Source: Trichosphaerium sp. ATCC 40318 (lineage: Eukaryota > Protista > Tubulinea). From it: a DNA stretch of 64,000 nt. Position 1 is the stretch's first letter. Each line of letters starts with the position of its first letter. Positions 36,274 through 41,400 of this stretch are shown here, piece by piece. The position numbers were made by a program, and so were the translations under genes. Under the pieces are notes generated by a model that was not told the origin of the DNA, ran no database searches, and saw nothing but the letters and a program-made list of their open reading frames with translations. The stretch covers positions 62,001 to 126,000 of the forward strand of contig JALMLS010000421.1 in assembly GCA_038496445.1 (NCBI GenBank), in the 5' to 3' direction.

Positions 36274-36472
36274 TAGGGCGAAACAACAATGTAAAAGAAT
36301 TCTAAACGATTTCTGACGAAATGCTTTTGGGTAATATTTTTTCGCTTGATCCTCACTTGAATCTACAGCCCATTTTTCGTTGTCTCTTCACACCAGTTAA
36401 ACCCCAGCGCACCTACTAACCTAAAGTTCGCACTGACAACGCTATTCCTTTCTTTTTAACACGATCTATAGG

Positions 36473-37279
36473 ATGGCTCACACAGCAAGAAACAAAATCA
36501 AAAAGCCAATCGGCGAACCAGTCACAGAGCTCGAGGACCAAGTTACCGAACATATTTTCGACTTACAACAAAATGCAGCGGAAACACTCAAGGACGAACT
36601 TGAAAATCTCTACATCACCAGCGTTGCTGAGGTTCCTGTTGAAGGAAACCAACCTGCTGTAGTTATATTTTTCCCTTTGAAACTCTTGAAGGGATTCAGA
36701 CGCGTACACGCTCGTTTGGTCGATGAGTTGTCCAAGAAACTCAGTGGCCGCGTTGTCTGCTTAATTGCCACCAGAACCATGGAAGGCGCCTACACATCTG
36801 GAAAGAAACCACAACACGCCACAACTGCTTTTATTCACGCTGCTATTCTCGAAGACCTCGTATATCCAGTCGATATCGTCGGAAAACGTATCAGATACAG
36901 AACAGACGGCACCAAATTGTTCAAAGTGTACGTAATTCTCACTTTCAGCGCAGAAAATTTTTAATTTGCTGATTTGTGGGCGTCAGAGCGAATATCGCAA
37001 TTGACGTTTTTGCCCATTGCATTATACGCGTAGTGACGCTTATATTTTTGCACAAAACGCTATTTTCCTTTAGCGCATTTTTTCTTTATCTTTTCACCAA
37101 AATTGTTAAAAAAACATTTTTACTTTTTATGTCATTTTGACACTCACCTTTCGCTTAGATTGCTCAACGAGAACGAACAACAAAACATTGAACACAAACT
37201 CTCCGCTTTGGAAGCTGTATACGTTCACGTCACAAAGAGGAATGTCAAATTTTTGTTCCCTGACCAACGCGCTGAATAA
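36473..37279 (+). CDS. RPS7: 40S ribosomal protein S7 (eS7), divergent
   Basis: RLVDELSKKLSG, HAAILEDLVYPVDIVGKRIRYRTDG and IEHKL..VKFLFP; intron at 36928-37158. Confidence 0.95.
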
Positions 37280-37817
37280 ATGATTTTTTTTAAACCATAC
37301 AAAGAGAGCCGACTGAGAAAAAGCTTTATACTAAAGAAATAAAAAAAAACAAAAAATAAAACGCGTAAAATTACTAAAACTAAAATTTTTTTTTTGTGAA
37401 ATGTCGCTACTCTACTACTACTTTTGTAGTGCAAATGAGGGTTTACAGACTTGGCGTAGTGGTACAGGCGCTCAGTAGTGTAATTTAACGGCGTACATGC
37501 GCAAACGTCATTAGCTCGTAGATACACAATGTGCACAATCACGGGAGCTCAGTACATGTTTACCCCGTCGTCCTATATTGCTATTGCGATCAGTTAGCAG
37601 AGTGCTTGGCGCCAGAAATCTACAAAAAAGAGCTCTTGGTAAAAACAGCTCCGTAAAGTTATGTACAACGCGGTTTATGGCAAAATCTCTGATTTACAAG
37701 CGAAGTTGTGATGTTCTCTTTTTTTACAGTTGGGTACTTAGTTCTACTCGTCCACTTGATTAGAGTTTTCGGTGCTATGTACAGCCAGATCTGTTTGAGG
37801 TAGTCCCATTGACCTTC

Positions 37818-38030
37818 TTAGATGTCGAAATCGCGAATAGTAACGTATATGTAAAAGAGGGCAGCAAAATAACCGGCTAGGAAGATCCACAAGAGAATGA
37901 AAGCGCCAATAATCTTAAGCCATTCCACAGGCGTGTCTCCGAGACAAGTCCATTTACCGGTTGTTGGATCGCGTCCGAATGGCGAGGAGCACTTGCAGCA
38001 CTTTTTTAACGAGACGTCACCCTTACCCAT
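37818..38030 (-). CDS. 70-aa single-pass membrane protein resembling the N-terminus and TM helix of Na,K/H,K-ATPase beta subunits
   Basis: DPTTGKWTCLGDTPVEWLKIIGAFILLWIFLAGYF resembles the beta-subunit motif NPxTGEFLGRTxxSWxxILLFYxxFYxFLAxxF; good ATG context (ACAAAAT-ATG). Confidence 0.7.
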   Translation of the reverse strand: MGKGDVSLKKCCKCSSPFGRDPTTGKWTCLGDTPVEWLKIIGAFILLWIFLAGYFAALFYIYVTIRDFDI

Positions 38031-38491
38031 ATTTTGTTTATCTGGTTTAAAGAATATGGGTGACTACCCGACTTATTTTACACGCAGTTACCCGAATTAC
38101 AGTTGCTGTCTCTGTTTGTTGGTTTAACTACCCATTACTATTGTTTAGCTTGACATTTAGTGTCAGAAGTCGTTAACGAAACGGCTACGTGGTGGTTTGC
38201 GCCCTACACTTGGTTAGTTCATGTTTTTATAGCGTTCAGGTTTAGATTCACATGTTGCGTTAGCAAACGTTTACGCTTGTAAATTATAGTGTCCTGTTGT
38301 TATGGTTGTACCACAGAACGAACTTTCTAATTGTTTATTGGCGCCTATTGCTTATTTCAGCATAGAAATTCTCGAACTTAATGAAAATCTTGTATTGGCA
38401 TTTATTATTGCACCTTTGACTACAAAAAACAGCTTGAGGCATTGTAAGTACCCTTAAAGACATTTGATGTCTCTTTCGCCTACCAGCCGCA

Positions 38492-41400
38492 ATGCCAAAA
38501 CCCTACGCAATGTCTACAAGGTATGTATAGCATTTTAAGAGCGCCTTGCGCCATTTCTAGCAAATGTCCTATCGAATCTGTTGTACCATGTGGGTTGACA
38601 ACGTAAGTGCACTAGCTAGTGGTGCAAGGCAAACGCAAGTAAAGTAAAAAAAGTATACAAACTAGCGTTTTACTCTAAACATGGGTATTTTATCTTCTAT
38701 TGGCTTGTTGAGCGCTCACAGAACCCTTTCAGGGAGCCGAAAACTTTTACAACACAAACACTGTAATATCTCACCTCATTGTAAATCGTAATCATACAAT
38801 GAGCAAAGCGAGTCACTACAAGGAGGCTGTGGCGTTGCAGAATAGTTTTAACAAAATAGGAACGGACCTCATTAATGCGCCTTCCGAAAATCACATAAAC
38901 ATCATGTTAGGTGCGTAGATTTACAAGAGAAACATCTTTTTGGCTTTCCGTTAAGTCTTTTTTAGGGAATGCGATGCATGTAACCTCAAACCTCGTATCT
39001 ATGACGGAGAACTTGACTCATAACGTTGTACGGCATTTGGACAATATTGATCTTTATCGAAACTGAACACCAAACAATAGAACAAATTATTGATGGAACT
39101 TGCTTCATCTACTACGCGCTTTACGAGTACAACGTTTCCAGAATTCCAGCAAAAAATGAAGCAATCAAAAAAACAAAGGCGTCGAAAATCTCCTGCTGAT
39201 GGTGAAACTGGAGCAAAAGAAAGTAAAACAGTTTCAAGTAGTGCTCGTGCAGATACTGAATGGATGGAAAATGAACTAGGTGTACGTTAAGTGTCACAAT
39301 CGGTGTTTTTTTCAGAAGAATGATGATTTTTTTTTGTTTGACTGTTGATCTTTTTTGGTACTAACGTATCTTGTTCTAGTTGGCTGAAACTGAACTCTTA
39401 CAGAAGCTGTTATCTGTGTACACAACGACACATAACTTGTTTGCTCGTGGTGTCATTTTCATGGACGAACTAAGGCCGTCAATAGAATGGTATCAAACAC
39501 GTTTGAATAATGTTCAAGAATCTGTACGGCTTATCACTCCTTCTGGTTGTTGTTATTTTTCTTCGAGTCTTAAACCCTATTAGCTCAAAAAGGGTGAACA
39601 GTTCGTTAGTGACGAAATACCTCCATCACTAAACATGGAGTACGTGTTATCAAGGAAAAGTCTTATTATTTTTCTAAATTACTTTTAGGAATTTACCTAT
39701 TCCTTCTCCTCGGGGTAGATCGATTTCTCGTGACAAGTCGCACATGTCGTTACCACCGTTACGTAATTCTGCACAAGCTGCATCGCCTAGAAAGCGTGGA
39801 GGGGCTCAGGCGAAGACAAAAGGTTACAAGGATTCTAGTAGTCCCGACAAGCCACATCAGCCAAAGAGAGGCTCGTCTAAGAGAGCGGCAGCTATGCGAG
39901 CTGGATATGGCGCAACTCTACCTACATTACCTATAACATCGCATACTGCCAAACCATCCAAAGTAAAGCATGGGGTACCAGTTACAAGCGATGGAAGCGA
40001 TGAGTATGACTATAAATCTTACCAGAGAACAGTAGTAACTGCTTTTAGTGATGTTGCACAAGGTTATGATAGTGCGCGATCAGCAGACACGATTGCCTCC
40101 CATAGAAGTCATACATCAGTTACGCCCGAAGTGACTAATTCAAACAAGTCGGTCACTTCTCCTACTGCTGATGCAGTAAACCTGTACGGCTTTTTTTTTG
40201 GTGCAGATTTTGACGTTATTAAGCGACCTTGGTGACCTCAAAGCATCACATCCTAGTATTGTGTCGCCTTCTGTTGATGTGCGCAAAGTTTTATTGCGTC
40301 TTGTTATATCTGAGCGTGGTTTTGTAAATGACTTGTTGTCTGTTTCTCAGGTACTCCAAAAAACTTTTATGGCTCGCCTACCAAAAAGTTAACTTTTTTG
40401 TAGGTGTACAAACCAGAGATTCTTCAACAAAAGAATATACTACGCTCAGCACAAGATGCTGACCTTTTGTTCTCAAATAGTCACGAATTACTTGAAGTAC
40501 ATAATCAGCTATGGAGGAATTTCGAGCAGCTCTTAGAGGTAAGGATAGAAAATGTTCTTTTTTGTTTTTAAAGTTTCTTTCGTGCTAACGCTGTTGTGTT
40601 TTTCTTTAGTCCACTAAAGAATCAACAGATCCAGAGAGCCTTGATATTGGTGCTATTTTCTTGTTGCATGGTCAAGCGCTTATGAATGTTTATCCTAAAT
40701 ACCACGCAAATGCACCAAGGAGTAGGCAGTGTCTTGATGATTATATGAAGAAGAGTAAAAAGTTTAGAGATTTACTTGCTAGTTGTGAGATGCGTGAAGG
40801 TGTTAAAGGGTTACAGAACATAATGGCATTGCCGTTAGCACGATTGGGTTACTATAAGGACATTTTGAAGGTAGTCCGTCACTTGTTGAGTTTTAAACTA
40901 AATTCTTAAGCGTGCTTTGGAAAATACACAAGAAAATAGTAACGCTCATGCAATGATGTTTGATGCTCTTGCTAAGATTAAAGATATTGAAGAACTCATT
41001 GAAGAGAAAGTTCATGCTGCCGAGTCGTTGAATGTCCTTAGTAGCCTTCAAGCGAGGATACCAGGTTTACAGGTTCGTTGTTTTTTAACGTTGTCTAAAT
41101 ATTGTATTCTTAACCTAACATCCTTTTTTATTAGATTAGCTTGGTAAGACCTGGAAGGCAGTTCTTAAGAAGTCAATCTGTTGTATCTGTTGTGATAACA
41201 GGCTCTACTATGAATAATTTTGGTGAAGATGGAAATGCCAAGAAAGTGAAGTCAGATAAACATCCTGACTTTGTATTTTTGTTTAGGTATCGTTGTTATT
41301 GATATATCTTTTTTTCGTTGTTTGCCATGTTGAAAGGACTTACCTTTGTTGTAGTGATATTCTTGTGTATACACGTCACAGACAAGGTCAACATCGTGAA

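Follow-up and report, generated by a model that had tools for sequence, protein, structure and literature searches.

A transcribed small gene of Trichosphaerium encodes an ectodomain-less protein of 70 residues that resembles the membrane anchor of the Na,K-ATPase beta subunit

In a 64-kb stretch of DNA from the amoebozoan Trichosphaerium sp. ATCC 40318 (hereafter, the window), it was found that a 70-codon ORF with an ATG start (37818-38030, minus strand, in the ORF list of the window) encodes a protein with a juxtamembrane motif and a transmembrane helix resembling those of animal X,K-ATPase beta subunits. The protein, called here the mini-protein, ends where a beta subunit has its ectodomain, and it is probably a minimal beta-like subunit. 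The origin of the beta subunit has been dated to the holozoan ancestor (PMC9609216), and the P2C pumps of algae and protists are described as lacking a typical beta subunit (PMC7911474, PMC9609216, PMC10654040). The limited literature collection searched contained no account of a beta-like protein that lacks the ectodomain. Sodium pumps outside the animals may have an overlooked minimal helper subunit. The evidence consists of an unspliced transcript, a family of equally short relatives, and a short but recurrent similarity to one protein family.

The sequence-only reading had described a 70-aa ORF with KKCCKC near its N-terminus, one transmembrane helix and a stop soon after it, and all of these are present in the translation. 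The coding sequence, 70 aa plus the stop codon, fills 37818-38030 and is supported by the ORF list and by conserved relatives; all of its parts lie on the minus strand. The N-terminus, predicted to be cytosolic, carries the basic, Cys-rich KKCCKC motif (residues 9-14; 37989-38006), and a K-C-x-K-C or K-x-P-K motif recurs in the relatives. This Cys-rich head might serve as an acylation or metal site. Between KKCCKC and the hydrophobic stretch lies DPTTGKWTCLGDTPVEW (residues 21-37), within which the juxtamembrane motif PTTGKWTCLGDTPVEW (residues 22-37; 37920-37967) is delimited by the alignment to animal beta subunits and by conservation in the family. The predicted transmembrane helix is a hydrophobic segment of 29 residues (38-66; 37833-37919), as indicated by hydrophobicity, AlphaFold2 and the alignments. 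The stop codon comes only four residues beyond it, after the tail DFDI (37821-37832), which is predicted to be on the outside face, where the beta subunit has its ectodomain. In the AlphaFold2 model, which was made with the family alignment, a disordered head is followed by a small hairpin (residues 18-29) and a long helix (34-68), with a pLDDT of 96 in the core. A Foldseek search of the model against the PDB gave only meaningless matches (E>2), as expected for one helix.

The basic residues are confined to the N-terminal side of the helix. As in the tail-anchored topological class, there is a single helix and it lies within the last 33 of the 70 residues. Thus, the mini-protein should insert as a tail-anchored protein with its N-terminus in the cytosol. 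Judging from the sequence, this N-in orientation would be the same as that of the beta subunit, and the insertion would be post-translational.

Is the ORF a real gene? Many ORFs of 40-70 aa lie near it, and such a length is common by chance at 36% GC. Therefore, transcripts and conserved relatives, and not the length of the ORF, are the grounds for taking it as a gene. RNA contigs from four public runs belonging to four studies were compared with positions 36300-39300 of the window. In each of the four runs, one collinear contig without any joint crosses the ORF: 37688-38029 in run X1, 37708-38025 in X2, 37679-38027 in X4, and 37659-38043 in X14. The RNA nature of these runs is evident from the neighbouring ribosomal protein S7e gene (RPS7e; 36380-37379, plus strand; Pfam Ribosomal_S7e at E=1.5e-41 and spliced contigs), whose introns are spliced in the same runs. 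RPS7e is convergent with the mini gene, its ORF ends at 37279, and it has two GT..AG introns. The longer intron (36928-37158, 231 bp) is spliced in all four runs and the shorter one (36426-36471, 46 bp) in three of them. At position 36748 within RPS7e, run X1 reads T for C, which is probably a strain difference.

The collinear unspliced contigs define a monoexonic mRNA of about 385 nt on the minus strand (37659-38043), and not the first exon of a longer gene. Beyond 38043, the X14 contig runs on into a template-switch oligo in reverse complement, with GGG; I take it to be the SMART oligo that marks the 5′ end of the mRNA. The same oligo precedes the 5′ end of RPS7e at 36379. The capped contig end and the ORF start leave a 5′ UTR of 13 nt (38031-38043). 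The mini-ORF starts at the first AUG of the transcript, which has A at -3 and G at +4. The 3′ UTR (37659-37817) is about 110-160 nt long as defined by the assembled contig ends, which fall at 37659-37708, rather than by a mapped poly(A) site. It had been proposed that the gap of about 540 bp to the RPS7 stop leaves no room for a typical ectodomain. The distance between the two stops was measured as 538 bp, and the transcript itself runs only about 110-160 nt past its stop without splicing. Since the unspliced mRNA ends so shortly after the stop codon, the missing ectodomain is real. The RNA contigs, which pass unspliced through the stop in four of four runs, also show no joint of the kind that was named beforehand as grounds for giving up the idea, namely splicing into a longer unrelated protein.

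Two further readings, a first exon that belongs to a longer gene and what is left of a decayed full-length beta gene, are very improbable. A small exon would in principle fit into the 538 bp downstream, and a low-depth contig at 37407-37653 indicates some transcription there. However, the contigs run free of joints through the stop in four runs that do splice the RPS7e introns. Moreover, in compact genomes the relatives stop at this same point, with the next gene 30-190 bp off, and the short form is under purifying selection, as described below. The low-depth contig was seen in X14 alone, lies between the two convergent 3′ ends and is not joined to the mini-ORF; it might represent read-through, or an isoform of either of the convergent genes with a longer 3′ UTR.

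The mini-protein turned out to belong to a family of short proteins. The exact sequence was not found among 15 billion predicted proteins; this illustrates how microproteins escape annotation, and the sequence-only reading had supposed that this one would be easily missed. A word-indexed search with the single sequence gave no candidates, and no paralogue was found elsewhere in the 64-kb window. A phmmer search of 1.84 billion cluster representatives returned seven matches, six of which are small (63-117 aa) and aligned over the motif and the helix. As to P0005, a repeat protein of 487 aa, it was rejected as a relative because it has only DPTTGKW words in common, a chance match. After profile searches, about 20 small relatives of 47-137 aa were collected, none of which has an ectodomain. 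The named members are from the red algae Porphyridium purpureum (FVE85_8288), Gracilariopsis chorda (BWQ96_08834), Agarophyton chilense and Chondrus crispus, and from the green alga Chloroparvula japonica (MMETSP1310); further members lie on other eukaryotic contigs. Only 2-33 residues follow the helix in the relatives. In compact genomes, the next gene lies 30 bp (L130) or about 190 bp (Porphyridium) past the stop of the mini gene. Since all of the relatives are short and the next genes are so close, the lack of an ectodomain characterizes the whole family and is no peculiarity of the Trichosphaerium locus.

The surroundings of the gene are conserved in florideophyte red algae, with the order Tic22 - mini gene - kinesin - WD40. 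This order, with a Tic22-like gene, was observed in Gracilariopsis, Chondrus and further assemblies (L002-L005, L253, L254 and L255), and the assemblies that carry it can thus be recognized as red algae. A single intron of about 100 bp interrupts the florideophyte mini gene a few codons past the helix, after ..RDY or ..ADF (L253:10001-10340, L254:10001-10349, L002:10001-10234 and L255:6972-7385). The C-termini ..NVS.. and ..FVS.. of P0007, P0012, P0021, P0022, P0026 and P0027 are probably artefacts of gene callers that take no account of introns and read into this one; the actual second exon codes for a short acidic tail. An environmental subgroup (P0001, P0008-P0011 and P0014; e.g. L006:3000-3254) has L-I-W-G-x-E-E-G-T-G-K ahead of the helix, and an Arg/Lys-rich head in place of the Cys-rich head. 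That motif presumably resembles the F-I-W-N-x-E of vertebrate beta1.

Over a core of 39 codons, the red-algal orthologues have a pN of 0.11-0.25 versus a pS of 0.62-0.98, the synonymous sites being near saturation, and the dN/dS ratio of this core is 0.05-0.10 where computable. Thus, the short form is under strong purifying selection in red algae. Among 15 members of the family, E36, A52 and I65 are invariant, and G25, P34, W37 and F55 are nearly so (F55 in 14 of the 15). G53 is present in 11, and position 48 is Tyr in 12 and Trp in three, including W48 of Trichosphaerium. Conservation is highest in the helix, where its periodicity peaks at 100 degrees, a pattern typical of a helix-helix interface and not of a plain anchor. 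These data bear on whether a chance ORF might sit on a non-coding or spurious transcript, given that ORFs of such lengths are common in the window. This explanation is hardly credible in view of the relatives, which span at least three eukaryotic groups (the amoebozoan, red algae and a green alga) and share invariant residues, of a red-algal dN/dS far under 1, and of the use of the first AUG in a good context.

What does the family resemble? Comparisons were made with 177,635 PDB sequences and 24,736 Pfam models. With the mini-protein as the query, one Pfam match was obtained: PF00287, the Na,K-ATPase beta family, over residues 28-64 against profile positions 22-59 of 284. Its score (E=0.013, 15.1 bits) is under the gathering cut-off of 23.3 bits. 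PF00287 was matched by 12 of 15 family members with a best E of 2.4e-4, none being reported at the gathering cut-off, and no other family was matched by more than one of the 15. Among the PDB sequences, the best match of the query was 8k1l_B (E=0.007, 34% identity over 41 residues), the beta2 subunit of the Na,K-ATPase of the brine shrimp Artemia (PMC10756188). With the family profile, the same chain was found at E=3.5e-7. Of the 21 matches with E<=10 in this search, 17 were beta chains of Na,K- or H,K-ATPases, all sharing one register, and further searches gave similar results. The Artemia chain was the only clearly significant one; the other beta chains were found at E=0.08-3, and unrelated membrane proteins appeared from E ~0.5. 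In the ESM-Atlas language-model feature search, PF00287 is the family of the three top clusters shown, and the ten best family-bearing matches share one family or clan. The score of 0.85 (185-194 of 256 features) is under the tool's trust level of 0.9, so that this result serves as a lead only.

The alignment places PTTGKWTCLGDTPVEW on the animal beta motif TG-EFLGRT-xxx-W, and the beta1, beta2, beta3 and H,K beta chains all align to the query in register. Within the juxtamembrane part, k-k-E-F-l-G-l-T-P-i-E-W of the family corresponds to EFMGRTGVNW of the beta subunit. In the helix, l-Y-a-v-l-A-G-f-F-a-a-L corresponds to FYTLLAGFFAGM, and W48 of the query is aligned with the second Tyr of FYVIFY and A52-G53-x-F55 with LAGFF of Artemia beta2. 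A beta subunit can be recognized by a short N-terminus, a juxtamembrane [FL]-[LM]-G-R-T-xxx-W and a single type II helix. The mini-protein has them, with LGDTPVEW as the motif and with a predicted orientation. The conserved helix residues of beta subunits, that is, the aromatic ladder and L-A-G-[FI]-F, are also found in the mini family. The glycosylated, disulfide-bonded ectodomain of about 230 aa is absent from the mini-protein. Because of this absence and the sub-threshold score, the mini-protein is not a member of PF00287 by the family's own criteria.

The profile was also divided into halves and searched against the PDB. A pre-helix-only profile found no beta subunit, and a helix-only profile found the Artemia beta chain only at E=3.3, which is not significant. 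Since both halves fail, the signal needs about 40 contiguous residues together. As far as can be judged by comparing sequences, the resemblance is more than hydrophobic composition, but it is short. The proposed resemblance to the beta subunit therefore stands in part: PF00287 is the sole recurrent family and Artemia beta2 is found at E=3.5e-7, but the match is under the Pfam gathering score. The same holds for the HMMER comparison with the Na_K-ATPase family that had been suggested, in which the query and 12 of 15 relatives gave matches, but the query reached 15.1 bits instead of 23.3. On balance, true homology of the mini-protein to the beta subunit appears likely.

The main alternative is a conserved tail-anchored microprotein with some other role, such as membrane organisation, trafficking or binding of an unrelated membrane partner, whose likeness to the beta subunit is convergent or coincidental. 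The Pfam matches, all of them sub-threshold, the failure of each half-profile alone, the unrelated membrane proteins at E ~0.5 in the same PDB search, the Atlas score below the trust level, and the fact that no link to an alpha gene was found in the 64-kb window are all consistent with it. Against it, one family recurs in one register for several independent mini lineages among all the PDB sequences and Pfam models compared, and the match spans a soluble juxtamembrane motif as well as the helix. Furthermore, the named carriers are all from groups with P2C pumps (PMC7911474; PMC3355532). I consider this alternative less probable than the reading as a beta-like subunit.

The animal beta subunits (ATP1B1-3 and ATP4B; PF00287) share with the mini-protein a cytosolic N-terminus, a motif of the type TG-x-[FL]-LG-x-T-xxx-W, and a single transmembrane helix in which an aromatic residue and A-G-[FY]-F are conserved. 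They are about 300 aa in length, whereas the mini-protein has 70 aa and, having no ectodomain, also has no disulfide-bonded Ig-like fold, no glycosylation sites and no binder of the SYGQ loop. In contrast to animal beta subunits, it has a Cys-rich head and an invariant Glu preceding the Trp. Members of the family come from red and green algae and from an amoebozoan, groups in which the beta subunit is said to be absent (PMC7911474, PMC9609216).

Other small subunits of P-type ATPases are similar in kind. FXYD proteins (the gamma subunit) and the regulins (phospholamban and sarcolipin) are single-pass proteins of 30-110 aa, which dock on the membrane domain of P2-type ATPases and tune their kinetics (PMC10654040, PMC11172918). 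However, they have been described from animals and have no sequence similarity to the mini-protein. FXYD proteins have a type I helix, an orientation opposite to that predicted for the mini-protein, and an extracellular FXYD motif. No FXYD motif was found in the mini-protein, nor any Pfam or PDB match to the FXYD family. KdpF of the bacterial Kdp pump (P1A) is also a very small single-helix subunit, which is thought to stabilise its P-type ATPase complex (PMC10654040), but it is prokaryotic, unrelated in sequence and part of another pump class. Might the mini-protein be a single-helix regulator of another P2-type pump (SERCA, PMCA or ENA), like phospholamban, sarcolipin or FXYD? Regulation of P2 ATPases by small single-pass proteins is an established theme (PMC10654040), and the size and the predicted cytosolic, basic, Cys-rich head would fit. 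Since neither Pfam nor the PDB reveals similarity to regulins or FXYD, and the orientation and the motif fit the beta subunit instead, this is improbable.

A beta-like subunit would need an alpha subunit as its partner. P2C alpha subunits are listed for Porphyridium and Gracilariopsis (PMC7911474), and P2C pumps are present in marine chlorophytes (PMC3355532). Amoebozoa can have alpha subunits as well, since sequences of Dictyostelium and Cavenderia have been placed among them (PMC9609216). Thus, the mini gene and P2C alpha genes co-occur in red algae, which lends indirect support to the docking on alpha proposed below, and each named carrier of the mini gene belongs to a group with P2C pumps. 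A metagenome scan with the P2C M6 motif IDLGTDMxPAI gave 120 alpha-like loci, near which no mini-like ORF was found. Among them was a red-algal alpha ORF (P0048; L239:5432-8950), whose 90% identity cluster includes P0050 of Porphyra umbilicalis, a P2C alpha subunit with 1056 bits to Na,K alpha chains. A scan of genome contigs with the pattern DKTGTLTQNRMT gave 120 loci, mostly of bacterial P2-type pumps and not specific to P2C, with no mini-like ORF. Eight mini genes were inspected together with their surroundings, and none has a pump gene within 10 kb; no natural fusion of alpha and mini sequences was seen in the phmmer search of the 1.84 billion representatives. The missing linkage is expected for unlinked eukaryotic genes and is uninformative either way.

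The red-algal alpha subunits have a peculiarity on the outer face. P0050 has about 147 residues (900-1046) between M7 and M8 versus about 24 in the shark alpha subunit, so the extra segment of about 125 residues is located exactly in the M7-M8 loop. It has been proposed that such an M7-M8 insert of algal P2C alpha subunits takes the place of a beta subunit (Pedersen et al. 2012, cited by PMC7911474). It is present in the same red-algal lineages as the mini gene. The insert is an extracellular segment inside alpha, whereas the mini-protein is a separate, predicted transmembrane helix. The two may be complementary, with the mini-protein supplying the membrane part that the insert lacks.

In animals, the beta helix is tilted against the support helices of alpha, and both the helix and the ectodomain affect assembly and cation affinities, according to PMC11172918, which cites Jaunin 1993 and Hilbers 2016 for their influence. 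The beta ectodomain grips the M7-M8 loop of alpha at SYGQ, a motif that is missing from protist alpha subunits, those of choanoflagellates excepted (PMC9609216). The helix of the mini-protein would pack, like the animal beta helix, against the support helices (the M7/M10 region) of a P2C-type Na+/K+-ATPase alpha subunit. Docked there, it might stabilise alpha or aid the membrane integration or folding of the M7-M10 bundle, and it might tune the E1/E2 balance of alpha. The functions of the animal ectodomain (the SYGQ grip on the M7-M8 loop, glycan-dependent quality control and adhesion) would be dispensable or supplied in cis. A separate mini helix together with an in-cis M7-M8 insert would then rebuild the animal architecture from differently divided parts. 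I infer homology over convergence, the topology, the docking on alpha and an effect on the pump. The best explanation of the whole, an N-in microprotein that combines the beta juxtamembrane motif with the transmembrane helix and docks on P2C alpha, has about an even chance of being correct.

A wider and more tentative possibility, to which I give less than even weight, is that the membrane-anchor module of beta is far older than animals. In that case, the P2C sodium pumps of red and green algae and of amoebae would be heteromers of alpha and a mini-beta. The animal beta subunit would have arisen as the ancestral helix plus an ectodomain, while algae would carry an ectodomain-like insert in the M7-M8 loop of alpha instead. 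A conserved beta-like helix in these lineages would offer a fresh point of departure for explaining how the animal pump arose. It would also be a natural experiment in which the roles of the beta helix are seen apart from those of the ectodomain. Several efforts to understand or express non-animal sodium pumps take alpha as acting alone, and a conserved, transcribed beta-like helix in algae and amoebae would offer a concrete candidate partner for co-expression with alpha.

Some minor features of the alpha sequences were also observed. The C-terminus of P0050 reads ..NTYW, versus ..ETYY in the animal enzyme. Many metagenomic P2C-type alpha ORFs are without the SYGQ/E motif for the beta ectodomain (L135, L137, L140, L150, L158, L193, L213 and L239). 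These ORFs keep a C-terminal aromatic pair (..NTYY, ..TYW or ..NTFY), and several of them are 1170-1460 aa in length, which suggests the presence of inserts.
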